A model generated the notes under the pieces. It had not been told where the DNA came from, did no database searches, and worked only from the letters and a program-made list of their open reading frames with translations. Shown here piece after piece: positions 4,393-40,008 of a stretch of 64,000 bases of DNA. Made by a program: the position numbers and the translations under genes. Location of the stretch: the IMG/VR virus record IMGVR_UViG_3300009430_000004, positions 62,001 through 126,000 of that record. One strand, given 5' to 3'. Each line of letters starts with the position of its first letter. The first letter of the stretch is position 1.

Positions 4393-4463
4393 GATCTACT
4401 CACAACCTTTCTATAATATTTTTTATAAATATGTTTGTAATTGTAATTTAAATAATCTGAAAT

Positions 4464-7385: not shown

Positions 7386-7397
7386 AACAAATATATA
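7386..7397 (+). promoter_or_regulatory. Late-type promoter for the baseplate operon
   Basis: AACA-AATATA-TA about 30 nt before the ATG at 7428. Confidence 0.7.
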
Positions 7398-21600: not shown

Positions 21601-24600
21601 CTACACCCATTAGGGATTCTCCTATTGCAGGTCCCACTACTTTGAGGGTTTCACCGACTGCTTTAAAAGCGTCGCCTACCATACCAACTATTTGTCCAGG
21701 TAACTTAACAAGAGATATTACAGCAGTCTTAGCTATATTACCTAATTCAATAGCAAAGTTTTTAATTCCTTTGGCTATTGTAACAGGAACGCTAAGTATT
21801 GCCTTAGCAGCATCCTTTATACCTGTTCCTATTTTACCTATAAACTCACCAACTGTCCTAAGTTTTGCAACAAAGAACTCTTTAATGCTGTCTAAAGGTT
21901 TGTATAACATCTTTCTTACTCTGCCAAAGAACCCAACTCTGTCTTTGTTAGCTGGGTCAGCAGCACCATCATCTGAAGTATTAGCCATTTTCTGAACTGA
22001 TTTTCTGATTTTATTGATATTGCTACCAACACCGTTTAATTGTCCATTTACTTCAGAAGCTATATTTCTAACATCTGTTGCGATTCTAGCAAGAAGAGCA
22101 TCTTTACCCTTAGGTAATCCTTTGCTTATATTATTAACCAATCTATTGGAATCGTTAACTGGTCCAGTTGCTGAGCTTGCAGGAACTGACTGATGCCCAG
22201 CCGCTTCACGAATAGCATTGGCTTGTTTTGCAGGCACTACCATTTCACCTTGGTGAAGGTTAGCCTTATAATTATCATGAGGTACATTGTCTATACCAGA
22301 TGCATGTGAATGTTCTTCATCTTCTTCTTTGTCTTTATTCTTTCCGAACCCTAAAGCATCTTTTAATCCACTAAATTTTTCACCTATGTTATAAGTTAAT
22401 CTATCTGTTGGATTAGGTTCTGTTGCTTCATTATCTATGGTCGGAACTGGAGTATCTGAGCTTAATGTTAGCGTAGAGGATTTATGACCTGGGATTATCC
22501 TAGATGCTATTTTGTCTATTGCATTATTGATTGATTCTAAGAATCCCGATGTTCTACGCATTTCATTAGATATATCATTTTGAAGTATATCTCTATTCTC
22601 CTGAGAAACTGTTATAAGCTCTTCCATTCTATTATTAGTCTCTTCTTGAGCCTCAATGACTGGTGTAGCTCCAGCTTCTTCCTTTTTCTCCTCTTCGGTT
22701 TTAGGTTTAACTCCGAATAATTTAGCTAAAGTTGAATCTAGTGAACCACTTTCGATAGCTTTCCTAATCATCTTCTTCTGCTTCTTATCCAAAGATTTGA
22801 AGTCTACTGACCCACCTTCACCAAGCAATTGCTCTAGAGGAACTTTTGTCATATCTGATATTTTTCTAGCAATCTCTTCTTGTGGCATTCCTATCTTAGA
22901 CTTATTTTTACCTTCAAGATCAGGTCTGTAAATACGAGACACATCCACATCAAGATAATTACCATCTTTGTCTTTTAAGAAATTGTCATAATCATATTTT
23001 AACCCTAGGCTTCTATAGATATCTAAACGCTGTTTCTTAGCTTCGAGTAATGCTCTTTCTTTGGAGAAAGTTTCATCCTGCTCTTTATTCCTCTTAGCTA
23101 TTTGCTGCATTCTCTCACCATTAGGGTCTGCATAATCTGCCCCGTTTTCACCGTATCTTGCGGCATCACGGGTTTGTTTATTGAAATACATGTCATTCAG
23201 ACGCCCAAAGAATCCTTTACCTACTTTATTTCCGTCTTTATCTTTAGTAGAGAATAGACCAAGTTTTTCTCCTTTAGCTCGTCTTTCTTTGAAATTAAGT
23301 ATTCCACCTTCTTTAACAACATTTCCATTCTCATCAACAGTTTCTTTTCCATTCCAGCCTTGGTCTATCATGGAAGTTAAACCTCTTTGAGCATGTTTTT
23401 TAGTTAATCCTTGTGATAACATATTTAATCCTTTAAATGGAGCAGCTAATAGATTACCCATTATCTTCCCACTAAAATTAAGGATTTTTGAGAAGAAACC
23501 TTTTAATGGTTTCATAACCTTATCTTCCATAAACTTTCCAAACGGCATTCCAACATGTTTCTCAAATACATTTCCAATAAAACTAGTAAAGTTTTCCCAG
23601 CCCTTCTTAAACATATCTTTCATGTTAGTTACCATTATTGAGAATTCTTTCTTTAATGGTGCTATAGCATCAGCAAATGGATTTGCAATGCTCTTAGTGA
23701 ACCATTCTTTGATGTTGAGATTGATTTCTGAGAATTTAAGTTTAAGAGGTTCTTGGACTTCTAGTTTAAACCAGTTAGAGAATTTACCAATTAAACCACC
23801 TTGTCTCTTATTTGTCTTTTCATCAAACTCTCCAAATATAGCTTTTTTCCATTTCTCGGATGAAAGAGCAATACCAGCAGCCGCACCAAGTACAGCACCA
23901 CCAAGCGGACCTCCTGGAAGCATTAAAGCACCCATTATACCCAACTTGCTAGTTACTAACCCAAGGGCGGAACCCCCTATAATACCAGCTCCAACATTTC
24001 CAAGCAAATCTTTATTTTTATTGGTACTTCTAAATATCTTATTGAATATGCCACCATCTCGTTTTCCATCAGCACCTTTTTCACCAAATAGGAACTTTTG
24101 AACTGCTTCTGAACGATATAACATTGAACCTGCTATACCCATAACAGCTCCTCCTACAGGACCACCAGGAAGGAAGAATGATGGTAACATACCAAATCCT
24201 AATAATGGTTTCATAGCTCCTACAACAGCTCCACCAACCATACCAGCCTTATTCTTCTTGAAGAATTCTTGTGTAGACTTGCTTATAACTCCTCCTGTTC
24301 TCTCACCCATAGAATCTTTATCACCGAATAACCAGTTTTTAAATCTATCAGATTGAGTTAGAAAGCCTAAAGTTGAACCTACAATTGCTCCTCCAATAGG
24401 ACCGCCAGGTAATAGTAATGAACCCAATAATCCGAGCTTACCACCCATTAGTAAACCAGCACCACTTCCGATAATACCAAATGCTAATGATTTAGGTGCT
24501 CGTTCTTTTATCTTCTTTGTCATTTCATCAAATGCGATGTAATTATTATTCTTAGTACCGTCTTTGTTTTTCTTTGGACCAAACATGGCTTCACTAAAAT

Positions 24601-27526
24601 TAGTAAATCCATTCTTCAATGCATTGAATGCCCCAGTAAATACACCTTTCTGTAAATCAGGGTCATTAGCATTTTTATCACCAAAGAGATATATTTTTAA
24701 TGTATCCTTGAAACCACCAAATACTTTCTTCACTTCTCCAAATACACTATTTTCATTATCACCGAATGAAACTCCTGCTCTATTAGTATATCCTTTACCA
24801 GTAAAGTAATACTTAGCACCGTCCCATATATCGAGCATCTCATTGGCTGTATCAGACATTAAACCGCCTTCTCTAGCACCATTTTCACCAGTAGGTCTAC
24901 CAAAGATAAAGTCGGCAAGTTTTCCCATTTTCTTCTGTAAGGAAGTGTAAAAATCACTTTGTTTTATCTTAGTAAACATACCGTCTTTACCAAATAGAGC
25001 TTCTTTAGCAGGAAGGAATATATCGTTCTTTATCCAATTACCAAAGTCAGCAAATTTACCTTTAAGATTAGCAAGAGTTTGATCCATAAAAGATGAGCTT
25101 GGAGAGCCATCTTTGGATGCACCGAATACTATCTTAAACATAGCGGAGTCTATCTTATCAAATACACCTTTCATTAACTTAGCAGGTGTTTGTAAAATGT
25201 CGTCAACTTTCTCTCTTATCATGTTATATTTATCTTGAGCTCCACCTTTAAGGAACTTAGCGAACCATTTAGCAACAGTTTCCTGTTGATCTGGATTTTC
25301 TTGCTCGCTTTTCATTTTAGCATATGCTTCAGCATGTTCCCTGAGCTCTTTGTCTGATTTATCAGATAAATCAATAGATGAACCAAATACCCATTTACCA
25401 TCTTCCTCTTTCTTTCTTTTCTGTTCTTCGGATAACCTTTGAACAGCCTTGTTATATTTAGAGTTATTGGTAGCGTAGTCTGTTTCTTCTTTCTTCATCT
25501 TAGCAGTTCTTTCACGGATTCTATCTAACGGTGAAGGTGTCCCCCCTGAAGGTGTTGGGGGTGTTCCTGACCCATTCCCTGGAGATGTTGAGCTATCTCC
25601 ATTAGGAAACACAATGATGCCGTCAAGTAATATTTTCTTAATATCTCTTAAATAATCAAGAGTATTATGACCAAATTTATCAACAGCATTCATTCCAAAT
25701 CCTCGTCTAACCTCATATTTACCAGTCGTAGAATCACGCTTAATATGCTCATCAAAACCTGATGCCTGGAACGCAGACACACCATATTTATACTGGTTTT
25801 CTTCAGCCTCTGTCATAAATCTTTCGAGACCTTTTCTAGCATTAATATGAGAAGTACCAGCCATATCAAGTAATGTATTATTTGGTAATGACATTACTAT
25901 TTGTTTGAATAACCTCTGCATATCATTGCTCTTAAACTGATGAACATTCTTTAACTCATCAATAGTATTTCCTTCAGCATCCTTCTCATTAAAAGGATTT
26001 ACACCATAAGGTGTTTTAGCTAATTTAACGAAGAATTTATCTATATCTTCCCTAAATGCATCTCTATCCTTATTGTCTTCGATTAGGAATGCTTCAGAAC
26101 GAGTTTTAATTTCATCTATTACATCACTGAAGTTAGAAAGAATTGTTCTTTCTTGCTCCTTTTTGAATTCCTTTGACATTTCAAATACTGAACGGAATGA
26201 ACCTTTTTCATAGTCAAAGGCTTGCTCTTCCTTGCCAGATAAAGTGGCAAGTATCTTTCTCAAGTATGTTGGGATTACATCTGTGATGGCTTTCTTTGTG
26301 ACACCATCAAAGGGAACTGTCCCTTTCTTATATTGAGATAAATCAATAGATGTCTTAGTCTTAACATTTGCTCCAAATATTTGCCCTATGATTTGTAGAA
26401 ACGGATTATTAGAATTGAAAGCCAATCTATTAATCTTCATCAATAAAGCAGGGAAAAAATTTTGGAACGATTGATCCATATTTTCCATTGACTTCTTTAG
26501 GAAGCCAGGAATTAAAGATGCTACTATCTTGGTTGATATGAAACTAAGTGGTGATGCTGCCAAGAACTTCAATGTATCTGTATCTTCAAGCATTGATTTG
26601 ATTGGAGATAAGAACATGTTTGAGTCTATAGCATTACCAAGGTTTTTCTTCATCATATTCATGTAGCCTTTTACATTTAGACCACCCCTTGATAGTAACG
26701 CATTATCTAATGGATCTTCTTTAATTTTCTTTTCTTGTTCTTGGTCAACTCCCTTAGATGACACTGTTTGTAAATGTGTCAAAGTATCATTTAATACTTT
26801 AAGGTTTTCTTCATAGAATTTCAAAGAAGCTCCTATATATTTACCCATAGATTCACTTTGGAAATTGACCAAAAGACTTAAATTGGCATTCAGTGACTCC
26901 ATGCCTTGTACTATTGCGGAGCTAGTTTGTCTGTTTACAAGCAAAGCGTTTGATGAAAGTCCTATGTTAACATCATTAATAGACTGGGCAGCTTGTATAG
27001 TTGCCTGAGTTTGTCTTTCTAATGCTTTAACCATAGGATTATTTTTATTCATTGAAGGCTCTACTACATTGACAGTAGTGTTTTTATTAACAACTGGACT
27101 GGATATATCATCCATGGAATCTGATAGACTAAAGTCATCATTACCCATTTCAAAGTCTCCGTCCCCAAAGTCGAAATCGTCTAAGCCTTCGTTATAGATA
27201 GCTTCTTGTCGCTCTTTATTATAAATCTTACCAGACTTAATATCTTCAAGAGCATTTTTCAAAACATCCCTACCTATGCCTATTTGACTATTAGCATTTA
27301 TAGAATCTGTGACCCTTTTACCAATGGATCTAAAGTTTCTTATCTCTGTAAAGAGTTCGCTAACAGTATCTTCATTTGAGGTAACGAATTCCATTGATGC
27401 TGGCATCATCTCATTGACTAATTCTGTAGATGTATAGCCTAATGACTTACCAACATTCTTAAACCAATTTAAGGCTCCACTTGACTTAGTTGTAAGTGAA
27501 CCTTTATTCTTATTCTTTGTCGCCAT
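15605..27526 (-). CDS. Giant tape-measure-like tail protein with C39-like peptidase and lysozyme-like domains
   Basis: 3973 aa; Trp-periodic helical repeats; HASGIDNVPHDNYKANLHQGEMVVP motif typical of tape measure proteins; YYSQGDDRWG...GCGPTSMAMV...GHFVV...INDP (C39-like); HESGG...SIGIIQW (lysozyme-like). Confidence 0.8.
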   Translation of the reverse strand: MATKNKNKGSLTTKSSGALNWFKNVGKSLGYTSTELVNEMMPASMEFVTSNEDTVSELFTEIRNFRSIGKRVTDSINANSQIGIGRDVLKNALEDIKSGKIYNKERQEAIYNEGLDDFDFGDGDFEMGNDDFSLSDSMDDISSPVVNKNTTVNVVEPSMNKNNPMVKALERQTQATIQAAQSINDVNIGLSSNALLVNRQTSSAIVQGMESLNANLSLLVNFQSESMGKYIGASLKFYEENLKVLNDTLTHLQTVSSKGVDQEQEKKIKEDPLDNALLSRGGLNVKGYMNMMKKNLGNAIDSNMFLSPIKSMLEDTDTLKFLAASPLSFISTKIVASLIPGFLKKSMENMDQSFQNFFPALLMKINRLAFNSNNPFLQIIGQIFGANVKTKTSIDLSQYKKGTVPFDGVTKKAITDVIPTYLRKILATLSGKEEQAFDYEKGSFRSVFEMSKEFKKEQERTILSNFSDVIDEIKTRSEAFLIEDNKDRDAFREDIDKFFVKLAKTPYGVNPFNEKDAEGNTIDELKNVHQFKSNDMQRLFKQIVMSLPNNTLLDMAGTSHINARKGLERFMTEAEENQYKYGVSAFQASGFDEHIKRDSTTGKYEVRRGFGMNAVDKFGHNTLDYLRDIKKILLDGIIVFPNGDSSTSPGNGSGTPPTPSGGTPSPLDRIRERTAKMKKEETDYATNNSKYNKAVQRLSEEQKRKKEEDGKWVFGSSIDLSDKSDKELREHAEAYAKMKSEQENPDQQETVAKWFAKFLKGGAQDKYNMIREKVDDILQTPAKLMKGVFDKIDSAMFKIVFGASKDGSPSSSFMDQTLANLKGKFADFGNWIKNDIFLPAKEALFGKDGMFTKIKQSDFYTSLQKKMGKLADFIFGRPTGENGAREGGLMSDTANEMLDIWDGAKYYFTGKGYTNRAGVSFGDNENSVFGEVKKVFGGFKDTLKIYLFGDKNANDPDLQKGVFTGAFNALKNGFTNFSEAMFGPKKNKDGTKNNNYIAFDEMTKKIKERAPKSLAFGIIGSGAGLLMGGKLGLLGSLLLPGGPIGGAIVGSTLGFLTQSDRFKNWLFGDKDSMGERTGGVISKSTQEFFKKNKAGMVGGAVVGAMKPLLGFGMLPSFFLPGGPVGGAVMGIAGSMLYRSEAVQKFLFGEKGADGKRDGGIFNKIFRSTNKNKDLLGNVGAGIIGGSALGLVTSKLGIMGALMLPGGPLGGAVLGAAAGIALSSEKWKKAIFGEFDEKTNKRQGGLIGKFSNWFKLEVQEPLKLKFSEINLNIKEWFTKSIANPFADAIAPLKKEFSIMVTNMKDMFKKGWENFTSFIGNVFEKHVGMPFGKFMEDKVMKPLKGFFSKILNFSGKIMGNLLAAPFKGLNMLSQGLTKKHAQRGLTSMIDQGWNGKETVDENGNVVKEGGILNFKERRAKGEKLGLFSTKDKDGNKVGKGFFGRLNDMYFNKQTRDAARYGENGADYADPNGERMQQIAKRNKEQDETFSKERALLEAKKQRLDIYRSLGLKYDYDNFLKDKDGNYLDVDVSRIYRPDLEGKNKSKIGMPQEEIARKISDMTKVPLEQLLGEGGSVDFKSLDKKQKKMIRKAIESGSLDSTLAKLFGVKPKTEEEKKEEAGATPVIEAQEETNNRMEELITVSQENRDILQNDISNEMRRTSGFLESINNAIDKIASRIIPGHKSSTLTLSSDTPVPTIDNEATEPNPTDRLTYNIGEKFSGLKDALGFGKNKDKEEDEEHSHASGIDNVPHDNYKANLHQGEMVVPAKQANAIREAAGHQSVPASSATGPVNDSNRLVNNISKGLPKGKDALLARIATDVRNIASEVNGQLNGVGSNINKIRKSVQKMANTSDDGAADPANKDRVGFFGRVRKMLYKPLDSIKEFFVAKLRTVGEFIGKIGTGIKDAAKAILSVPVTIAKGIKNFAIELGNIAKTAVISLVKLPGQIVGMVGDAFKAVGETLKVVGPAIGESLMGVAKIFSGAMGAVKETMIGFGKGVGSLFFQLGKGTGELLVKFGKMTMGLVETVGNTIGKTFTIVTDFGLEMTKRTTDMLFAVGSNIADFTLKTITGVGEKLAEVGNTLWQIVTSPLKFLSQGLGKLLGIQEQKVVVVGGTLDVVREVQSIGTNRMAAPRSLETNTDSLVQSVRIVGSDVCLPVYLCPEKIVSSFEKIQPFAVRVDQSNGVLATALSPDSMKEAFNRITPLPVRIDTDMQGIERQSGFSVSSLVGGSSTAMVAPEFKNNNLAASVLAGMDKFDESNDKEEEAKKQNERLESEAAARQAHASRLTAANVQAANALKEEKQHERNWKDRILELLAGLGKDTRQHTTDWADIFGKKGLFMVGALTLLPLLKKAMEWLLGKGNDSRTDVGGTTIVNSDLVEHGTRAVGYGIKKASEHLMAPLKNSIQEFKKTFQGVKKVWDEVFPPIKKKGIEMWDDVSEKAHVVWDDIAEKSKGVWDNIAEKFTGTWDNIAKKFFPNIVEKGVNVADDAARATAKNKGPISKVVDKVKQFGNKGDVEAGEVIMETSNVSFVDEATEGTSKIAQAVNPANDVVKKAGGGKVVDFAAAKAAKESGEDVTKIAVDGADDVVDAVNKGRIEKFTKMAMDAVDNIARMFEKKFPKAAKAIGPAMDVLGKVLKKVKWVKYLPKVAKGLAKIAAAAATALASDAVWATWGAVTGGFEAAHLFKVDSDEVDWIMRAISSGMKALLNVSWFFVIEILNDICVEMTGVDFIQMMATQIYKAITSDEKGAKLEQAQADFKAEVDAYNEANGTKLSVDAYNDKVNKTVGQHIADGVSNTWKGIKAGASWVGDKTSKAWNATTGALSWAGNKIGEGAQWAGNKIAQGASVAWDATKKGAAWAGEKISQGAQWAGEKIQQGASVAWDATKKGAKMVWDNSALGGAVNAFKNDDMVKQNFNLKGDGKITTGMRAASGAAEALEKLSLGLLDAEKTAKTFYGIGLRFNDFMEGTKKFIGDNLVEPAKKAWTSAKEKINEKLEEFKKEASETWNGIKEGIGKQWNSAKETIGGALSAVGQYTSEKWEALKTNIGSAWDSAKTVVGEKLEAFKQNASETWDALKTNIGNAWSSAKETIGGKLEEFKANTSETWGNIKSNIGDAWGTAKGIIGEKLEAFKAEAGETWESIKSGVGKQWESAKSLIGTAAANIKDTAGNIWNSMPEPVKDRLGEAKETITTGAKKLADGAKELWGNIGDTISDKWKDIKKHLTEGLDRIGGFFKGIGNFFKNGFDSVKNFFTGRASDELDKLGWGEGGYGNVPVPDTKYNKSLNKRVPKVEGGGFGVESDTINNFAYYSQGDDRWGRYAYDHSPQFGTRSENPTLKARGCGPTSMAMVATQLTGKRYEPPQMADLAQKGGYSSSAGTSWGYFDKMASMFSLQKTEINPSSQRSQLQSMLDQHVPIILSGTRKHSADQSPFTSSGHFVVAVANDGPNGIVINDPRGPAYSKTYNLNTVLDEARKGWGFRYTGGSLPDPRNPEAYTPSSSPIGGTMENPTILDLFGKMSEAFSLYSENLYSGENKQLSWGDSFLTGSSSSDGYVGNFNIDFIPKNVQDAILKKTAELTVKHESGGKYTYGRNDVNASTGQRISPSIGIIQWRGGNAKAIMDRMLQEMPDNPEARYFASKNWNDSSPWSQSEQDRLEKYLASNMQVTKKVQDSFLLDHVKNRNLAPVYKYGVEPGKIKDPRSIAFLAEIANSGPALVKPFLERYSPTSATGKAEFQHFYNEFMSKSYWGPKSIYSNRLKSSFNSLVDWDPEQGGFGDRIVREPETILGGFGDMMCDITTKLTSSQRTSAPEKVQDVKGGFGDLTESITDTLNNALSGEGKIKSEGMRLPSFYEDPNPEVRSYMYGNSDIQKAGLSDDLLKTAIEVLRNIENNTGATSEGIKELNKKECVVNVITKSQTTTSIEGEDGEKPAGSTIVVAPPQTNNYINPIMGMANDRRNNKQQRDYQTAKGIAKGRTN
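17850..19150 (-). repeat. 11/22-residue Trp-periodic coding repeats within the tape-measure-like protein
   Basis: Examples: GAQWAGNKIAQGASVAWDATKKGAAWAGEKISQGAQWAGEKIQQGASVAWDATKK, and repeated KLEEFK..ASETW..IK..IG..W.SAK units. Boundaries approximate. Confidence 0.8.
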
Positions 27527-33200: not shown

Positions 33201-34704
33201 CTTCATCAGGTCCAGTTTTAACTACGGGTTTCATGAAGAGTTGTTTTACGATAAGCTTTTTATTTCCACCAAGATACATAAATTTGTCATCTATAAACTT
33301 AGGCACATCAAATCGTAATCTGTGACGTACTCTATTGGCATCTTCAAGGTCAACTATATAAGTTTCCTTGAAGTTCATTTCATCTGAGCTGTCCACAACT
33401 TCGATATTTCTAACATAAACAGGTATTGACTTATCGTTAAGGGAAGTAATTATATTAACTAAATCCTTCTTAGATAAGGTTTCGTTATATGCTTTTTCAA
33501 AGTGTGGATATTTAATAGTTGTCATATTCTTATTGGTTGTTGTAACCTTATTCGATACATCAATTGATGGAATAGCGATTGATTTAGTATCCATCTTTTG
33601 AATTTCCTCAAGAGTCATTCTCTCAAGCTTTATTTTCCTCTGTTTTTCACGAAGTTCCTGGTCTCTCTTTATAGATAGAGTTGAACGACCTGTTTTTTGA
33701 CTTTGGTTAATATCATATACTTTCTTCAGAAGCTGTTGGTCAACAATCAGCTTATCTTCAAGCTTTTTCTTAATATCGTCAGCATCATCTTTAATATTAA
33801 CCTTCTCTTCTTCCATGACATCTTCAAGTCTATCCTTAACACTTTCTTCAAGCTCAGGACTTTCCTCTTCGTTTCCAGTGAACTTGTACGTTTCAATGAA
33901 TTTTGCAGCAACATCATTGAATATCTCGTATCTCTTAGCATCTTCCTCTATTTGTTTTTCATCATCCAATGCTGAAAGGTCAGCATGTATTTTTGAAATT
34001 TCTCTACGGAAGGCTGTGAATGATTTATCATCACATTGAGCAGGATTAACTCTCATCATTGAGTCATTATTATAGAAGACTATGTTGACATCCCCTAATT
34101 CCTTAAATTTGTCGAAGTATTTATACATCGCAAAATAAAGAAGTAGAACAGGATTATCAAAATTTAATCTCCTATTCTCAGCAGCTCTCTTTAATCCAGC
34201 TATCCTCCAGTCATCCATTCCTACAACGATTGTTTTTATTTTATAACCGTCCAATCGAGGATCATTAATGATATTCTTGAGATAATCAATATACCCTTTT
34301 GTTTTTAAGTCATATTTTAGCTTTCTGGCAAAATCAAAATATATAGTATTGTAAGTAGCTAGGTCAAAATACACATTCCTTTCATTAAGATTACTTATTG
34401 AAGGGACAGTATTTAGGAATTTAATTCCTGACTCTAGCTCACCATATATCGCTTCTCTCTCTTTTCTGTAGATTTTCCTATATGTCTTATTAGCTAACTT
34501 ACCTTTATAAATAGAGTCCATATAATAGAAATGGAACTTATTATTGTGATAAAGGTTTTTGTTTTCTATAAGACGCATAGAAGCATCCAGAGAACCGTTA
34601 TTGATGAATACAATACTATACATACTTTGAGCTTTTTGATCTACAGGCAATTGTGCCTTTTGTTTAAACACTTTCAAGTGCGGAATATCCGAAATAAAAA
34701 TCAT
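30229..34704 (-). CDS. rpoB: Multisubunit RNA polymerase beta-like subunit (probably virion RNAP) with long N-terminal extension and C-terminal Zn ribbon/SET-like appendage
   Basis: STSPDANCGVVRQL, RTAMATKQSKH, TYEDSTFV, VGDKITFFTALKSIIGEV and PGAVLARMT correspond to bacterial beta motifs (ETPEG.NIG, RALMGANMQRQ, NFEDS, GDKMAGRHGNKG, PLGVPSRMN). Late-type promoter at 34738-34749. Confidence 0.9.
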   Translation of the reverse strand: MIFISDIPHLKVFKQKAQLPVDQKAQSMYSIVFINNGSLDASMRLIENKNLYHNNKFHFYYMDSIYKGKLANKTYRKIYRKEREAIYGELESGIKFLNTVPSISNLNERNVYFDLATYNTIYFDFARKLKYDLKTKGYIDYLKNIINDPRLDGYKIKTIVVGMDDWRIAGLKRAAENRRLNFDNPVLLLYFAMYKYFDKFKELGDVNIVFYNNDSMMRVNPAQCDDKSFTAFRREISKIHADLSALDDEKQIEEDAKRYEIFNDVAAKFIETYKFTGNEEESPELEESVKDRLEDVMEEEKVNIKDDADDIKKKLEDKLIVDQQLLKKVYDINQSQKTGRSTLSIKRDQELREKQRKIKLERMTLEEIQKMDTKSIAIPSIDVSNKVTTTNKNMTTIKYPHFEKAYNETLSKKDLVNIITSLNDKSIPVYVRNIEVVDSSDEMNFKETYIVDLEDANRVRHRLRFDVPKFIDDKFMYLGGNKKLIVKQLFMKPVVKTGPDEVQVCSNYNKMFIRRFGTKVSSKIEKFKKALLNPSSNVKVKYGNNLAANSKYKSILEYDELSKIYSIIKVNNAEFVFNQDEVRARIDTKKYRLTENDFCIGFFLNNNEPILMDLNTQMMGGMDIIDFILSCDQGKLVEDFDSATAGKKFMYTKATIMSKNVPVLLLLGYVEGITSVLRKANIRHHFSDTRPKVSNNEGVVQFADGYLVYDKYPYENSLLLNAFADIPTKAFDYADFDGKDAYLSIFEIMFNNKMIGNAFDNFYDFMIDPITKEVLEDLNYPTDFVSLILFANSLLADNSSIKENNMNIYRVRSNEIVNAILYKQIADAYSQYRITAYNNNPVKISVPQDIVLKKLLTLQTVEDYSILNPIVELEKSRAITPKGHVGMNLPEAYTQDKRSYDPTMMGILSISTSPDANCGVVRQLSLEPNIVSPRGYIEVNDDRLEKLTDANLFSPAELLSPLGVTRDDSIRTAMATKQSKHIIPIAKSSPVLISNGSEQVIHYHLSNDFIVRAKLDGEVVEVNEDAGIAMVKYKDGSVQAIDTQPRVVKNGAGGFFLSNQLSCNLKKGQKFKENDILASDKHFFSESPLDGNRFNIGSLQKVACLSTYSTYEDSTFVTKKLSYDMAADVVMQKVVSLGKNANVDYIVDIGQKVQVGDELIRFETSFDDDSLNKFLASVGNELKEEIKSLGKTPIKSKYSGVIEDIKIYSTVELEELSPTLRKIVSDYYEKINKKKKIINKYDKSDSVFKAGVLLNDATGKIEAKDGKIKGTEVGEGVLIEFYIKYKDTVGVGDKITFFTALKSIIGEVIPEGYEPYSEFRSQEEVSSVIAPGAVLARMTPSILLTMFGNKVLVEMKRKLQEIYSGKPWEPVKESMGDIMARCVHCGALIGYEEAWNETGTCPDCGKDYRGNDGRALLEATLINLYKAKNVDDNPSYFTKKEFSEGEIVCPILDKNNKLTVVGHYIKPSNKPTCKVEGDKLVAVRQIKNMKN

Positions 34705-34763
34705 TTTCGATCACCCTTTCTCATAATAGTCTAGTATTATAAGAATGTTAGTGATCGAAAACG
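34702..34763 (-). promoter_or_regulatory. RBS/start-codon-sequestering hairpin containing a late-type promoter, upstream of RNAP beta
   Basis: mRNA cguuuucgaucac...gugaucgaaaaUG and uucuuauaaua/uauuaugagaa arms; AACA-TTCTTA-TA at 34749-34738 lies in the 5' arm. Confidence 0.75.
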
Positions 34764-34922
34764 TTATATACCCTACGAGTGTATGTGTTACAAAATCCCT
34801 CAACTTGGAAGCCTTACCCCCAAGTACATCTTGGGAAAAATCGCAAATTTGTTATCATAGAGCGTTGTCTCAGCACCCGTCATCTATGACCTCCTGGTTA
34901 CTTCTAAAAAGGTTTTCACCAT
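34764..34922 (-). ncRNA. Putative structured small RNA or leader (contains a possible 27-codon sORF at 34800..34883)
   Basis: Follows promoter 34923-34934; GC-richer than its flanks; stems ucauaga/ucuauga and acuugg/ccaagu. Confidence 0.4.
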
Positions 34923-35122
34923 TAATTTAATGTTTGTCCATATATCTTTTTAAACTTTAATTTTTGAGCTAACATGTGTATAATAAAGAAAACCGTAAAC
35001 TTGAGATAATTAAGTATATATTATTAATGTGTATAGCACCAGATAATAGATAAGCTGTACGTAATATATACACTTATATTTCATGTGGGTAAACAACAAA
35101 CAAAATTTAGGAGGAATAAACC

Positions 35123-35374
35123 ATGGAAAAATCAATAAAAAATTATTTCGGAATCGGTGTTAGAAAAGGTGTTAAGTTAGAAAGTCAAGGATTAGTTGAC
35201 TTAAGTATATTAGCTGAGCTTAAGATTAGAAAAGGAACAAACAAAACTCTCATAGCAAAGCAAATGCAACAAGGTGAGAACATAGAGAAATATATAAACA
35301 ATGTAAAACAGACTTTGTTAGATTTAGGCGTACAAGAAAAAGACATTTTAGGAATCTACAATTTCTTAGCGTAG
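35123..35374 (+). CDS. Hypothetical early protein
   Basis: 83 aa; SD AGGAGG; early-type promoter at 35015-35024; terminator near 35405-35440. Confidence 0.65.
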   Translation: MEKSIKNYFGIGVRKGVKLESQGLVDLSILAELKIRKGTNKTLIAKQMQQGENIEKYINNVKQTLLDLGVQEKDILGIYNFLA

Positions 35375-35492
35375 CAAGTTTCTTTAATTTGTCCCATAGA
35401 ATAAAAATAGGGTTCGATTCGTCGAGCCTTATTTTTTTTATATTTATATATTATTTATAGGTATAGTAATACGTATTAAAGGAGGTAATTAT

Positions 35493-36302
35493 ATGACTAT
35501 CAAACTAGATAGAATAGTTTGTCAACAGAGAATAACAAGAAAAAGGCACATATGGTGGCAATATACTATTGCTGATGACAAAATATATTTGAGAACTATA
35601 AAAGGTGGATATCCGAAGTTCGGAGAATTATTCATCGCATTAATGAGAGATGTACCGTTTTGTAGACATTATTTTTCCGAGGATTTTATAGTAGATAAAT
35701 ATATTACTCTAGAATCAGGAATATTTGGTACAGGTGGTAAGAAGGATGTCACACATCATCTATGGGCGTATATAGATCAAGATGATGAAGATATTAATGT
35801 GATAAACTTGTCAGATGAATATGAATTTAAAGAACCTTTAATATATCCTATAGACAAGTTAATCCAGATATTCAATATGTTGTATTCGGATTATATTGAC
35901 GAATATATAATACAAGATAAACGCTATTATAAATTAAATACTGTTGAGCTATATGACAAGAATTGGTATAAACGAAGTTATAGTGAATTATTTGTTAGAT
36001 TTAATAAGATGGATGAAGAAAAGCTCCCATATATTTTATCTAAACATTTTGGAGGATTTACTAAGAAAGATTCCAAATTAGAAGTATTTAATTATAATAT
36101 GTGCACTATGTGGGATAAGAAGGATGAGAGAGGTATTAAATACCGTGATGTTATAAAGAAGAAGTTTGGTGGATTACTTAGTAGTTTCTATATAGTATAC
36201 TATGCAGATGGGTGTACTATTGATACAACACGGGTAGAAGATAAATTCCTTAAAAAGTTATTAGGGGAGTTTACTAATAAAAATGAGCAAATTAAAAAAT
36301 AA
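35493..36302 (+). CDS. Hypothetical early protein
   Basis: 269 aa; SD AAGGAGGT; early-type promoter at 35445-35454. Confidence 0.65.
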   Translation: MTIKLDRIVCQQRITRKRHIWWQYTIADDKIYLRTIKGGYPKFGELFIALMRDVPFCRHYFSEDFIVDKYITLESGIFGTGGKKDVTHHLWAYIDQDDEDINVINLSDEYEFKEPLIYPIDKLIQIFNMLYSDYIDEYIIQDKRYYKLNTVELYDKNWYKRSYSELFVRFNKMDEEKLPYILSKHFGGFTKKDSKLEVFNYNMCTMWDKKDERGIKYRDVIKKKFGGLLSSFYIVYYADGCTIDTTRVEDKFLKKLLGEFTNKNEQIKK

Positions 36303-36322
36303 TATGGACAAACAATATAATA

Positions 36323-36575
36323 GATGGGGGACCGTACAATTTTTGTACTTGCCTACTTCCAACAAAAATTAGATTAAGGATTGTGGTTTAAACCACATAA
36401 TTCCTTGCTCTACAGTTGGGGGTAGGGGGACCGTACCGCTAGGTAATAGTTAAGACAGTCTCGAAGAGACTGAGTAGTAAAGGACAAGTGCCAGACGAGA
36501 GCTATAATATAGAGAAAAAAATAAAAAGAAGAAAATATAATTAAGAGTATATACCAAAAAAAGGTATATACTCAT
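36323..36575 (+). ncRNA. Putative structured non-coding RNA
   Basis: No long ORF and GC-richer; promoter 36311-36322; long hairpin 36352-36426; hairpin cagtctc-gaa-gagactg; 12-nt direct repeat GGGGGACCGTAC; terminator 36545-36578. Confidence 0.55.
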
Positions 36576-36597
36576 TTTAATTTATCTTAAAAAGGAG

Positions 36598-37179
36598 ATG
36601 AAATTATTAATGGATAATAAAATAGTTAGTATAGGTTCAGTTAATAAAAATTCAAGAGACTCTAAGTTTAAGAGACATATACAAAGTAATTTTACTCAGG
36701 ACAATCTAAAAAGAGAGATTGAAAATATGGCATCATTTATTAACTATGATCCTAAATTACTACTTAGTGTGAAGGAAGAAGTTGATAGATATTTTGAATC
36801 AGGTTCATTCTATAATTCAGTCTTTCAAGAGATTTCTGATGGAATTGGTACTAATGACTGTAGATTAGTAACTGACCCATTTGGAACTAAAATGTTTATA
36901 TATAAGATAGAAATCAAGTTAATAATAGGTATGTCAGATGTAGTTAGACATAATAGATTTCTTATAGATGCTATTGCTAAATATGCATTCAGAACTTATA
37001 AGAATGAAGGTTATAAGCAATATTTACTAGATGTATTTGAGACGCAAAACATGGGAATACAATTCATGGAAATTTATATACAAGATAAAGATATTTATAT
37101 GGGAGGAGAGATTAAATTACTTAAAGGTGAATTGTACGATAAGATGTATCACTATTATGAATTATTAGGTGACCAATAG
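36598..37179 (+). CDS. Hypothetical protein
   Basis: 193 aa; first gene of a tightly packed + strand cluster. Confidence 0.55.
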   Translation: MKLLMDNKIVSIGSVNKNSRDSKFKRHIQSNFTQDNLKREIENMASFINYDPKLLLSVKEEVDRYFESGSFYNSVFQEISDGIGTNDCRLVTDPFGTKMFIYKIEIKLIIGMSDVVRHNRFLIDAIAKYAFRTYKNEGYKQYLLDVFETQNMGIQFMEIYIQDKDIYMGGEIKLLKGELYDKMYHYYELLGDQ

Positions 37180-37570
37180 GGGTAGAGGGAAGATGTATGA
37201 AATAATAATTAAGTTTGTTAAAGGAACCACATTCAATGTTACTAGAAGAAGATTAATTAAGATGCTTAAACAGCTAGCGAAGAAAGATAAAGTTACGCTA
37301 GCTTATGAATATAATAATAGTATGGGACATCATAATATAAGGGAGATGAAAGGTAAGATAGTCGGATTTAGCGTTATACCAGTATTATATGATGGTAAAA
37401 CACCATATGAATATCAGATAAATGTAAATTACAGAGAAGCTGGGACTGAGGCTATGAAATCTTGGCAAGTATTTGTAACAGCAGATGCAGAGTTTTATGG
37501 ATACTGCCAAATAAGATGGTGTAACAGTGGTCCATGTTGTTATATAACAGGTTCATGGGAGGGTAAATAA
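37169..37570 (+). CDS. Hypothetical protein
   Basis: 133 aa; probable start at the internal MYEII after AGAGGGAAG. Confidence 0.55.
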   Translation: MTNRGRGKMYEIIIKFVKGTTFNVTRRRLIKMLKQLAKKDKVTLAYEYNNSMGHHNIREMKGKIVGFSVIPVLYDGKTPYEYQINVNYREAGTEAMKSWQVFVTADAEFYGYCQIRWCNSGPCCYITGSWEGK

Positions 37571-37963
37571 ATGCACGAGATACATTTTCTAATGTTTGTA
37601 AAAGATCCTAAAACCAAAGAGATAGTTAAATTATGTGTGGTTGCAGACAGTAATTGTTTTATTAGTGCAACTGTTAGAGAAGACTTCATGTTAGATGTCT
37701 ATGATAATAAATTACTAGGAGAATTAGAAAGAAACTTTCCTATAGAATTACTTCATTTAAGTAGTAGCAGCATAGCTGATTTCTTTCATAGCTCCTGTAT
37801 ATTTCCAAGACCCATACAAGACTTCTATGAGAAATATAAAGATGAATACTTTTCAATGGAATTCTATATGTTGCAGGCAAGTTTAGATGACATAAAGAAG
37901 TTTAAAACAAAATATAACTTGCCTATATTTACAAGAGATATCTATCTTACTTTTAATAAGTAA
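37571..37963 (+). CDS. Hypothetical protein
   Basis: 130 aa; SD GGGAGG; abuts the previous stop. Confidence 0.55.
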   Translation: MHEIHFLMFVKDPKTKEIVKLCVVADSNCFISATVREDFMLDVYDNKLLGELERNFPIELLHLSSSSIADFFHSSCIFPRPIQDFYEKYKDEYFSMEFYMLQASLDDIKKFKTKYNLPIFTRDIYLTFNK

Positions 37964-37964
37964 G

Positions 37965-38567
37965 ATGATAAATAAAATCAAAGGAGGTATTATCATGCCA
38001 AGAGAAGAAATGCATGAAGACCTATATAAAGAAATGAAGGATTATGTCGATACATTCGACGATGACAAAGAAAACAATAGGGAAGAAGACGATGAATATT
38101 ATGACAACAGGTATATCTATAAGAATTATCAGATTTTATCTGAAGCATTAAAAGCTTATGACCCTATTGAAATTACAACTATTGGGGCGTTGTTGCCGAA
38201 GAATTATGACCCAGATTCAATTAGTGATGATTACGATAATGCTGAATTTTATTCAGAGAAGTTTAGGTCTATTGATGATATCGTTGAAAAACTAGAGGAT
38301 GATGGATTTATGGTAACGAGTTTACCAGAGGATTTTGAAATGGCATCGCTTGATTTTCATGCTGAGGATGAGGATCTTGAAATAGAGGGTTGGATGTCAC
38401 AAAATAATAATTATAGAGTCATATTTGTATTTGCAATATTAGAAGATTCATATTATCCTTTTGCAACTATAATGAATGACGATGGGAAAATTATAAAGAA
38501 TAAGGATAAGAAGAAACCTAATATTATAAACTTAAAGATTCCGTTTATATCTAATTCATTTTTATAA
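37965..38567 (+). CDS. Hypothetical highly acidic protein
   Basis: D/E-rich; likely start ATG 37995 after AAGGAGGT. Confidence 0.6.
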   Translation: MINKIKGGIIMPREEMHEDLYKEMKDYVDTFDDDKENNREEDDEYYDNRYIYKNYQILSEALKAYDPIEITTIGALLPKNYDPDSISDDYDNAEFYSEKFRSIDDIVEKLEDDGFMVTSLPEDFEMASLDFHAEDEDLEIEGWMSQNNNYRVIFVFAILEDSYYPFATIMNDDGKIIKNKDKKKPNIINLKIPFISNSFL

Positions 38568-38647
38568 GAGGGTGTTAACACCCTCTATTATTTTTTCAAG
38601 TATATATTATAGAAGTGAGATAAATAAACAATAAAGGAGTAGATAAT

Positions 38648-39254
38648 ATGAAATTTTATTCAATGAAAGATTTAAAAGAAAAGACTAAAATGCAAATTAC
38701 AGAGTTTCCAAAGATATCAATATGGTTTACAAACTACCCCTGAAGATTTTAGTATAAAGGCAAACTATTTCGCTGACACTGGAGATATCGTATTTGTTTA
38801 CAGGGATGAAAAAGGTGAATATCAATCCAATGTTGTTAAGATACATGATAGCTATGGACTTGGTGTTTGTAAGTTATCTATAATGGATACTAAGATATTC
38901 ATTGTATTTGGTAAGAATACATTGAAGAATGAATCGGGATATGCATATTCAATGAAACCTGAAATCAATAAGATTCTTGAAGAATACTTTAGTGAGCTCG
39001 GTGTTGAAGTAACTTATGTTGAAGAACTTGAGGTATCTGAGTATATATCTGGGTTCCATGATGCAAAGGAATTCTTTAATAAATGCCCATATGAAATAAA
39101 GAGTTTTGATATAGACCTTGATGATGTATATATGGAAGATTGTGATGTTAAGGTGGTTAGACAGCTATTTGATATAGCAGACCAATATGATGTCACCGAT
39201 GAAATCGAAATCAAGGCTACAAAAGAACTAAAGGGATATCTTGATAAAAAATGA
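38648..39254 (+). CDS. Early gene interrupted by an apparent +1 frameshift at CCC_TGA (38738-38743)
   Basis: ATG 38648 with SD AAGGAG gives 31 aa to CCC TGA; the +1 frame (PEDFSIKANYF...) runs without stops into track ORF 38883..39254, which has no SD of its own. Confidence 0.65.
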
Positions 39255-39421
39255 TGGTAATGATAGAGAAAGAAAAAGTAGAATCTGTTGACTGGATTGA
39301 CTTTGAAGATGTTGAACTTAATAATGCTACTAAAGAACATTTCGACCAGATTGATACTCTTATAACAGATGAATCAAATCGAGATGATATAGGATTCAGG
39401 GTTCGATATATTCTTAAATAG
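39251..39421 (+). CDS. Small acidic protein (56 aa, below track cutoff)
   Basis: ATGA overlap with the upstream stop; MMVMIEKEKVESVDWIDFEDVELNNATKEHFDQIDTLITDESNRDDIGFRVRYILK. Confidence 0.5.
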   Translation: MMVMIEKEKVESVDWIDFEDVELNNATKEHFDQIDTLITDESNRDDIGFRVRYILK

Positions 39422-39444
39422 TCAAAAACAATCAAATAATAAAT

Positions 39445-40008
39445 ATGGCACTATCTCAGTGCCATATTTTTTTAGGAGGTGATGAAATGAAGTTACATGT
39501 TTTATTTGATTCAAAATCTAGTAACGTTGTGGCAATGGCTGAAGAAAAAGACTATGTCCTCCGTTATATCTTACAGAATAATTTTAATGAAGACTATAAA
39601 ATATCAAGTATCAAAAAGAAAAGTTTAGTTGAGAAATATTTGATAGTTTACGAGGAGTTTTTATTAGATGAATATGAGGAATTAGTCCTCACTACTCTTG
39701 AAAGAAGAATAGTTAATAATACTATGGGTGAAGAGCAGGCGAGGATAGAAAATACTATTGACGAATTAATGAAAATGGTCGCAGAGTATAATTTTAGTAG
39801 TAAGGATTCTGCTAAACTTAAAGAAGCTATAAAAGTATTAGAGAAGAATTCTAAGCCTAAGCGACTAAGTATTCTACTTAATATTAAGGAGTTTATTTTC
39901 ACTTTATTTTCACCAAGTGGAAAGAATATCATAGATTATTTTAAACAGCAATTTGGTATACAAGAGGAAACTAAATACTTCATCCACATCAATATAGAGG
40001 AGGATTAG
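39445..40008 (+). CDS. Hypothetical protein, likely paralogue of 50346..50813 and 50826..51293
   Basis: Likely start 39487 after AGGAGGTG; similar N-terminal beta pattern and C-terminal helical pattern to the other two. Confidence 0.55.
   Translation: MALSQCHIFLGGDEMKLHVLFDSKSSNVVAMAEEKDYVLRYILQNNFNEDYKISSIKKKSLVEKYLIVYEEFLLDEYEELVLTTLERRIVNNTMGEEQARIENTIDELMKMVAEYNFSSKDSAKLKEAIKVLEKNSKPKRLSILLNIKEFIFTLFSPSGKNIIDYFKQQFGIQEETKYFIHINIEED

Follow-up and report, generated by a model that had tools for sequence, protein, structure and literature searches.

A predicted structured RNA family encoded beside an orphan protein gene in AR9-like giant phages

A structured RNA 3' of the p269 gene

We analyzed a 64,000-nt window (bases 62001-126000 of the 218,088-bp IMG/VR virus record IMGVR_UViG_3300009430_000004, which is complete and has terminal repeats) and within it the gene-free interval of 295 nt at window positions 36303-36597, which follows the gene of an orphan protein of 269 amino acids (aa), p269. 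Comparative sequence evidence firmly indicates that this interval encodes a conserved, strand-specific structured RNA of a new family, with a conserved late promoter and usually a terminator. The best explanation overall, for which belief and doubt are evenly balanced, would be a family of discrete structured non-coding RNAs (ncRNAs) of AR9-like giant phages that act with or on p269.

The interval had been singled out from the sequence alone as a candidate structured ncRNA of no known type with its own promoter and terminator, and all sequence features listed in that original prediction lie where it had placed them. It had described a stretch with no long open reading frame (ORF) and richer in G+C than its surroundings, and both hold: 36303-36597 is free of genes, and G+C reaches 42-43% in the core versus ~28% in the upstream gene. 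Small ORFs within the interval were rejected as candidates, since none has a Shine-Dalgarno sequence. The RNA also fits no known type, as had been proposed. Rfam 15, whose families include tRNA, tmRNA, SRP, RNase P, 6S, Y RNA, riboswitches, T-box, ribozymes, CRISPR repeats, tracrRNA, and pRNA, gave no match at gathering scores in the 64-kb window and only chance-level matches around the region at E up to 10, the RNAs of six related loci had no Rfam match, and ARAGORN found no tRNA or transfer-messenger RNA (tmRNA). A blastn search against cultured phages returned no match for the region, and DNA comparison with the eight polymerase-related phages gave low-complexity matches to the purine-rich tail only.

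Homology and covariation

A covariance model (R2) was built from the window sequence alone with a curated structure of three helices (P2, P3, and P4; Table 1) and searched against 26.8 kb on both strands with filters off. Two matches were significant, at 335-493 of locus L053 (42.6 bits, E = 9.6e-9) and 701-870 of locus L052 (30.2 bits, E = 7.9e-6), and both begin ≤11 nt from a predicted transcription start. The first single-sequence model (R1) had found nothing in the polymerase relatives G001-G007, and MAFFT alignments of the related RNAs were structurally wrong.

In the three-sequence model alignment, whose fitting to the structure under test somewhat inflates the figures, 97% of cells fall in standard pairs (45-50% once partners are slid over by 1-3 columns), both sides differ in 19 pairs (1-4 in the slid controls), and none of 500 shuffles reached the observed values. 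Nevertheless, the gap between the observed pairing and the slid controls is large. Pairs changed on both sides in this alignment include 9 of 12 in the base of P2 and 4 of 7 in P4. The helices are kept through compensatory substitutions in homologues; covariation was one of the checks proposed along with the original prediction.

Helices were further compared by hand across six loci, namely the window, L047, L049, L050, L052, and L053. Every base in the basal stem of P2 pairs in each of the six (9-17 bp; inserts span 37-62 nt), and every G-U pair in P2 has its U on the 5' arm. Five loci have P3 directly 3' of P2, and two of its pairs covary (UACC/GGUA, UCAC/GUGA, CUUAC/GUAAG, and UUCAC/GUGAA). 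P4 occurs in all six, and its five loop-proximal pairs all vary, with two to four pair types each (e.g. CAGUCUC/GAGACUG, CGCCUC/GAGGCG, CUUCCCC/GGGGAAG, and GUUCAC/GUGAAC).

L047, L049, and L050 also share the architecture of a 5' G-box, P2 with a G-rich 3' arm, P3, P4, and a purine-rich tail. Four of the six loci, namely the window, L052, L053, and L049, have a UGGGG box 4-27 nt past the predicted start, and in place of P1, L053 has a hairpin of 7 bp whose loop carries the G-box. UUGGG..AGG is conserved in the P2 3' arm. Within the tail, which is 63-72% purine in all six loci, a CCA(GA)CGAR motif follows P4 (CCAGACGAGAG in the window, CCAGACGAAGA in L053, CCACGAGAGG in L052, and CCCACGAAAG in L050). 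Conserved unpaired elements of the RNA include the G-box and AUAGU. A clear terminal hairpin with a U run is present in the window, L050, L052, and L053, with weak candidates in L047 and L049, and the core G+C content exceeds that of the neighbouring gene by 9-18 percentage points in all six loci.

In the window, the four stem segments already described in the original prediction make P2 an imperfect duplex of ~27 bp. Relative to shuffled sequence, P2 is more stable on the + strand (z = -6.8) than on the - strand (z = -4.4), where two G-U pairs become C-A mismatches. The G-U pairs fit the + strand only, which supports the + strand as the functional one; together with the compensatory changes in relatives, this bears out the earlier view that they favor an RNA over a DNA operator. 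Over the whole of 36438-36500, stability does not exceed that of shuffled sequence (z = -1.1).

Promoters and terminator

Two promoter motifs recur in the genome, the early one of the AR9 virion RNA polymerase (vRNAP) type and the late one of the non-virion RNA polymerase (nvRNAP) type. The early consensus, TATATATTAT-N5-T-G, derives from 40 sites. The late core AACA-N6-TA is not rare by chance in A+T-rich sequence and is not enriched overall (141 matches in the window versus 153 expected); near genes, of 576 matches in the genome, 71 fall ≤80 nt before an ORF start versus 23 expected, a 3-fold excess. Late sites are concentrated 17-35 nt upstream of start codons and follow the extended consensus AACA-W6-TAA. 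In AR9, differential RNA sequencing (dRNA-seq) yielded an early consensus AAATATATATTAT-(6N)-G and a late consensus AACA-(6N)-TA/G, whose last base is the start (PMC5312081). The early and late consensus sequences derived from the present genome equal those mapped in AR9.

The putative promoter of the RNA at 36311-36322 is of this late AR9 type, AACA-(6N)-TA/G, the class used upstream of genes. Its distance to the next start codon is 276-288 nt versus the usual 17-35 nt. The predicted terminator stood as well: the hairpin at 36545-36573 contains G+C, has a free energy (dG) of -15.3 kcal/mol, and is followed by the U-rich run AUUUUAAUUU. Transcription in AR9 halts at predicted intrinsic terminators (PMC5312081). 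The terminator at 36545 may be leaky, because its U run is shorter than in neighbouring terminators. No promoter was found between it and the next gene, and no pairing that would compete with it, so an anti-terminator switch was rejected.

The same terminator is the first one 3' of the early promoter of p269. With none in between, we infer that the structured region is at least the 3' end of an early p269 mRNA starting at G35461, a predicted origin that adds to the original prediction. The distance from the p269 stop codon to the terminator, 243 nt, is unusual, and 48 of 75 other stop-to-terminator distances are 0-37 nt.

Relative to the transcription units of AR9 and PBS1, the locus has the same two promoter consensuses (TATATATTAT-N6-G and AACA-N6-TA), a late promoter within an early operon, and a terminator as boundary. 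It differs in that the late promoter precedes a conserved non-coding structure instead of a protein gene.

An early-promoter core, TATATTAT, also lies antisense within the RNA tail (36504-36511, - strand), preceded by TC, versus TA in the 40 consensus sites. The AR9 virion polymerase has been reported to be intolerant of changes such as TC for TA at this place, and an antisense transcript from this site is unlikely.

Linkage to the p269 family

Relatives were found by an exhaustive HMMER search with p269, which recovered seven remote homologues (27-38% identity); homologues lie on six other uncultivated contigs among L046-L053. p269 has no match in Pfam, PHROG, or PADLOC, tblastn with three family members gave no match in cultured phages, and the polymerase relatives G001-G007 have no p269 homologue. 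Six peptide-pattern queries over IMG/VR added no new relative, and one re-found the L049 contig. The family is basic (pI 8.4-9.7) and rich in aromatic residues. An AlphaFold model of p269 from a six-sequence alignment reached a predicted local distance difference test score (pLDDT) of 74 and a predicted template modeling score (pTM) of 0.79.

Wherever the contig continues, a gene-free stretch of 250-730 nt lies 3' of the p269 homologue. The late promoter keeps its position there, as a consensus copy in L046, L049, L050, L052, and L053 and a one-mismatch copy in L047, 35-44 nt past the stop codon (20-44 nt with the window included). In all-against-all comparison of the neighbour proteins, the p269 family alone was common to all loci. 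The p83 family occurs in the window, L046, and L050, with its homologue upstream of that of p269 in both contigs (adjacent in L046), and p83 may belong to the conserved module. L050 is syntenic with the window, with an RNA-polymerase-beta-like gene on the opposite strand and an early promoter before the p269 homologue. The genes 3' of the RNA are unrelated among loci and to the next gene of the window. Since the p269 family is shared by all loci and the downstream genes are unrelated, the sequences place the RNA with p269, not with the downstream gene. This genetic coupling to the p269 family goes beyond the original prediction.

In L049, the 729-nt gene-free stretch also contains, within L049:4120-4560, a second late promoter, AACAAAGAATTAA, and a segment of ~18 nt, CCCUAUUGCUCCCUUGAG, with near-perfect complementarity to CUCAAGGGCAAUAGGG in the first RNA's tail. 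The two together suggest a second RNA able to pair with the first.

Weighing the evidence

That the element is a conserved functional RNA structure is highly probable. Less assured, though probable on sequence grounds, is the proposal that a separate RNA of ~255 nt builds up late in infection. Such an RNA would extend over ~255-260 nt, from A36322 to ~36580, and could be made by two routes: as the 3' end of the early p269 mRNA (start G35461, terminator 36545), or alone, from the late promoter 20-44 nt past the p269 stop codon. It would act together with, or on, the basic orphan protein p269, either as a ligand or scaffold of p269 or, made late, by titrating or regulating early p269. A partnership with p269 is favored because the gene pair is the only thing conserved; even so, that the RNA works through p269 is a tentative proposal, and binding of the RNA by p269 is speculative.

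Besides the inflation of the covariation figures, several points weigh against a discrete late RNA acting with p269. The late promoter copy in the window scores 8.3 bits (rank 88 of 2845 AACA sites); more than 90% of likely true sites score higher, and the +2 A is missing. Judged from the window alone, its chance of being active would be about one in four, and it is rescued by the conserved position of the late promoter in related loci; the promoter of the original prediction thus stood in its class and position, and the copy itself proved weak. What ties L047 (E = 0.3 in the R2 search), L049, and L050 to the family is position and architecture; none of them has a significant score. In L046 the promoter is present, but the 110 nt available there are unlike the family. 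The p269 model has no fold match in the PDB or in AlphaFold DB clusters. Finally, the next gene lacks its own promoter in the window, L050, L052, and L053, an arrangement also compatible with a leader role.

As a cis-acting leader, the late promoter, RNA, and terminator would form a portable control cassette through which the downstream gene is expressed late, either by attenuation at a leaky or regulated terminator or as a put-like RNA that makes the polymerase terminator-resistant. The four loci just named, where the terminator is directly followed by the ribosome-binding site of the promoter-less gene, fit such a role, and AR9 provides parallels in late promoters that may sit inside early operons and in 5' untranslated regions of up to 491 nt, proposed to be regulatory (PMC5312081). 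The order of promoter, stem-loop RNA, terminator, and promoter-less genes is also that of the HK022 put RNA and other cis-acting antitermination or leader RNAs; there is, however, no sequence relation to put. No alternative pairing rivals the terminator, the downstream genes change from locus to locus while the upstream gene is always of the p269 family, and in L049 the next gene lies 688 nt away behind its own early promoter, which together make a leader rather unlikely.

A further reading places the region in the 3' untranslated part of the early p269 mRNA, with P2 as a stabilizer or an RNase III-type processing site that would set the half-life of this mRNA or cut it off from downstream messages. 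Processing hairpins have precedents in the early transcripts of T7 and SP82, and those cut by host RNase III are intercistronic, imperfect duplexes of ~20 bp or more. The ~27 bp of P2 in its four segments, the lack of a terminator before 36545 in the early p269 transcript, and the linkage to p269 all agree with this. A late promoter kept past the stop codon at seven loci (one with a single mismatch) would nevertheless be needless in a pure 3' untranslated region, and the conserved single-stranded motifs, P3, and P4 exceed what a processing hairpin needs, so we regard this reading as unlikely, somewhat more so than a leader.

Far less probable is a decoy against host defense, for example a mimic of a host guide RNA. 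The RNA does recall a single guide in outline, with a 5' segment of 30 nt, a hairpin with 36-nt arms like a repeat:anti-repeat duplex, and three stem-loops, and a phage RNA that copies the Cas9 single guide, rAcrIIA1, offers a precedent (bioRxiv 10.64898/2026.06.03.729762). With rAcrIIA1 and pseudo-ToxI, it shares an intergenic promoter-to-terminator RNA gene and a long duplex followed by several stem-loops. In contrast to these decoys, it has no tandem repeats and no likeness to Rfam CRISPR repeats, trans-activating CRISPR RNA (tracrRNA), or ToxI; for CRISPR repeats and tracrRNA this holds at E up to 10, host repeats not having been compared. P2 varies widely in length and sequence (inserts of 37-62 nt), and a decoy would leave the link to p269 unexplained.

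Equally improbable is a DNA-level element (operator, recombination site, or replication origin) or a non-functional recombination leftover. The surrounding island is absent from polymerase-gene relatives, and cumulative GC skew reaches its genome-wide minimum at a distance of 1.4 kb, as such an element might have it; against this stand G-U pairs that fit one strand, compensatory changes that keep RNA helices, a promoter and usually a terminator conserved on the same strand, and a genome with neither integrase nor reverse transcriptase.

Known systems and rejected identities

Several protein genes have an adjacent partner RNA, such as Ro60/Rsr with Y RNA, TnpB with an omega RNA just 3', and reverse transcriptases with their ncRNAs. 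The present locus resembles them in having a structured RNA of 150-300 nt beside one protein family across unrelated neighbourhoods, and TnpB in particular in that the RNA lies directly 3' of the protein gene. It differs in that p269 is unlike Ro60, TnpB/Cas12, and reverse transcriptases in sequence or fold, the RNA matches none of their Rfam families, and the p269-RNA partnership is a proposal.

The best Rfam match was the RT-17 RNA (RF03020) at 36429-36526 (19.1 bits versus a gathering score of 40.4, E = 0.55), which is at chance level; several of the predicted pairs are non-canonical. A retron or other reverse-transcriptase-associated ncRNA was rejected given this sub-threshold score and the lack of an adjacent reverse transcriptase, the whole genome having no RVT_1 match. 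Type III toxin-antitoxin loci have tandem RNA repeats of 34-45 nt, a terminator, and then a toxin gene of the ToxN/AbiQ family; here there are no tandem repeats and no ToxN-like protein, and the downstream gene is not conserved among loci. A guide-RNA system (TnpB/Cas12 omega or tracrRNA), in which a RuvC/zinc-ribbon nuclease gene adjoins the RNA, was dismissed because PF07282 (TnpB/Cas12-type) has no match in the genome and the p269 model matches no Cas or TnpB fold.

Integron attC sites go with an integrase gene and act as bottom-strand DNA through a hairpin with RYYYAAC and GTTRRRY boxes. No integrase or tyrosine recombinase is encoded in the genome, and the G-U pairs favor a top-strand RNA, so an attC or other recombination site was rejected. 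A miniature inverted-repeat transposable element (MITE) with target-site duplication was rejected for want of terminal inverted repeats, and likenesses noticed by eye to the T-box, RAT, 5S-like RNAs, group II domain V, and tracrRNA found no backing in Rfam. A replication origin was likewise set aside: the skew minimum is nearby, but it tracks gene orientation.

Features of the locus and the 12-nt repeat

Table 1. Mapped features of the p269-RNA locus in the window, and predicted late promoters at related loci
Feature	Position	Strand	Remarks
p83, small orphan gene	35123..35374	+	Early-type promoter TATATTAT at 35017-35024; own terminator 35403-35436
Early promoter of p269, TTTATATATTAT-N6-G	35442..35461	+	TATATTAT core at 35447-35454; predicted start G35461
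p269, orphan protein gene, 269 aa	35493..36302	+	Conserved neighbour of the RNA
Late-type promoter AACAATATAATA (AACA-N6-TA)	36311..36322	+	Predicted start A36322, 4 bases before the first G-run
5' G-box, first copy of GGGGGACCGUAC	36326..36337	+	UGGGG box
P1 hairpin, GUACAA-UUU-UUGUAC	36334..36348	+	Not conserved in this form
P2, long imperfect hairpin, 75 nt	36352..36426	+	Arms 36/35 nt; 5' arm pyrimidine-rich, 3' arm G-rich (UUGGGGGUAGG)
Second copy of GGGGGACCGUAC	36425..36436	+	Spans the P2/P3 junction
P3, 4-bp hairpin, UACC-GCUA-GGUA	36434..36445	+	Same place in five loci
P3-P4 linker, unpaired AUAGU	36446..36450	+	Kept in window, L052, L053
P4, 7-bp hairpin with GAA triloop, CAGUCUC-GAA-GAGACUG	36456..36472	+	5-11-bp hairpin in six loci
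Unstructured purine-rich tail, 70% purine	36473..36544	+	Motif CCAGACGAGAG at 36491-36501
Intrinsic terminator, 11-bp stem, 7-nt A loop, then AUUUUAAUUUA	36545..36583	+	z = -6.6
Next gene, orphan, 189 aa (193 aa if start 36598; p193)	36610..37179	+	Without own promoter; outside the conserved module
Late promoter of L053	Predicted start to next gene 249 nt		AACATAAAAATAA
Late promoter of L052	Predicted start to next gene 323 nt		AACATAATAGTAA
Late promoter of L050	Predicted start to next gene 377 nt		AACATAAATATAA
Late promoter of L047	Predicted start to next gene 537 nt		TACATATAAGTAA, one mismatch
Late promoter of L049	Predicted start to next gene 688 nt		AACATATAATTAA
Late promoter of L046			AACATATTAATAA

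The exact 12-nt repeat GGGGGACCGTAC occurs at 36326 and 36425, with no third copy in the window, and its core GGACCGTAC has only these two + strand copies in the 218-kb genome. By itself, the repeat is only mildly unusual, because 27 exact 12-mers are repeated within 150 nt in this genome, four of them at ≥50% G+C. It is absent from the relatives, which have GGGGUGCUCAC, GGGUAGCUCAC, or GGGGUGCUUAC in place of the second copy; all that is shared is a short UGGGG box near the 5' end and, in P2, a G-rich 3' arm. The repeat of the window looks like a local elaboration of the likeness between the 5' G-box and the G-rich P2/P3 junction, and the original suggestion of a protein sponge with two binding sites is weakened accordingly by its lack of conservation.

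A degenerate 99-nt tandem repeat was rejected, as two 99-nt units share only the 12-mer. The exact twin 12-mer pattern had no match in IMG/VR. In metagenomes, it occurred in four other contigs, none homologous (three G+C-rich tandem repeats and one low-complexity repeat array), and at least two of the three G+C-rich contigs would encode Gly/Pro/Tyr-rich repeats. These matches are attributable to chance because GGGGGACCGTAC recurs in tandem in the G+C-rich arrays of metagenome contigs L041, L043, and L044, where the in-frame reading is Gly-Gly-Pro-Tyr.

Genomic context

The 218-kb phage genome comes from a groundwater metagenome and has 33.5% G+C; an identical copy in a second Joint Genome Institute (JGI) record added no variation. 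Near the flagged region, it encodes an RNA polymerase beta-like protein of 1491 aa whose closest relatives are those of Listeria phage LPJP1, Staphylococcus phages S6 and SA1, and Bacillus phages PBS1 and AR9 (35-38% identity). Based on the match of promoter consensuses and the polymerase similarity, the source is an uncultivated giant phage similar to the AR9/PBS1 group in its RNA polymerase and promoters. From the relatives of the polymerase, we would guess at a host in the Bacillota.

The block 34704-39445 (p83, p269, the RNA, and genes of 189, 133, 130, 200, and 123 aa) is missing from the RNA-polymerase-gene relatives. In locus L005, ~1 kb separates the polymerase gene from the homologue of the gene at 39445. 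Because of this arrangement and the absence of the block from the polymerase-related phages, sequence comparison marks the block as a variable island. None of the island proteins matches a known family, and p193, p269, and p200 have no close database relatives; word-based protein searches with these three returned only the query proteins, and a protein atlas gave no lead on the function of neighbouring proteins. The product of the next gene has no Pfam or PADLOC match and a database match only to itself, and the structure model of p193 is poor (pLDDT 42).

The RNA polymerase beta-like gene and p83 have divergent promoters, and the stretch separating these includes a patch of 43% G+C. Inside the patch, a 27-codon ORF with a perfect AGGAGG ribosome-binding site (34800-34883, - strand) is probably a small gene missing from the annotation rather than a second RNA, with fold z-scores of -1.2 (+ strand) and +0.1 (- strand). 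The cumulative GC skew of the whole 218-kb genome has its minimum at window position 34954, in an A+T-rich divergent intergenic region (34900-35000), which could be a replication origin or merely the biggest switch in gene orientation. Elsewhere in the window, a single ORF of 3973 aa occupies 15605-27526 on the - strand.

The promoter survey identified ~50 late AACA-W6-TAA sites 17-35 nt before start codons and ~40 early TATATATTAT-N5-T-G sites. Examples of both codes are at 7386, 11562, 39427, 41160, 46737, and 51320 on the + strand and at 4435, 6945, 27565, 34749, and 61637 on the - strand, and some early sites carry a CGTA(A/T)(A/T)T element ~25 nt upstream. Outside the window, the - strand of genome positions C1:39950-40300 has two strong late promoters (18.9 and 18.3 bits) with no downstream gene. 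From each, a short predicted transcript would run to a terminator-like hairpin, and the two are candidates for additional late non-coding units of the phage.

Implications

The findings point to a new RNA family, supported by homology, compensatory changes, and the placement of promoter and terminator, and linked to a protein with no recognizable fold. To our knowledge, few ncRNAs of giant phages have been characterized. In the AR9 study, which mapped the transcripts of that phage, none of the terms small RNA, sRNA, and noncoding occurs (PMC5312081). That the AR9 early and late promoter code reaches uncultivated groundwater phages makes transcription units, non-coding ones included, predictable from sequence alone.

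It is possible, although doubtful at present, that the RNA and p269 are the two components of a new ribonucleoprotein module in giant phages with AR9-like promoters. The RNA, made separately late, would then scaffold, guide, or switch off the activity of early p269. Such a module would lie within a variable island of early genes, where host-takeover and counter-defense functions tend to occur, and two orphan genes would gain a shared, testable context. If true, the module would be an RNA-based timer or effector for host takeover or counter-defense.

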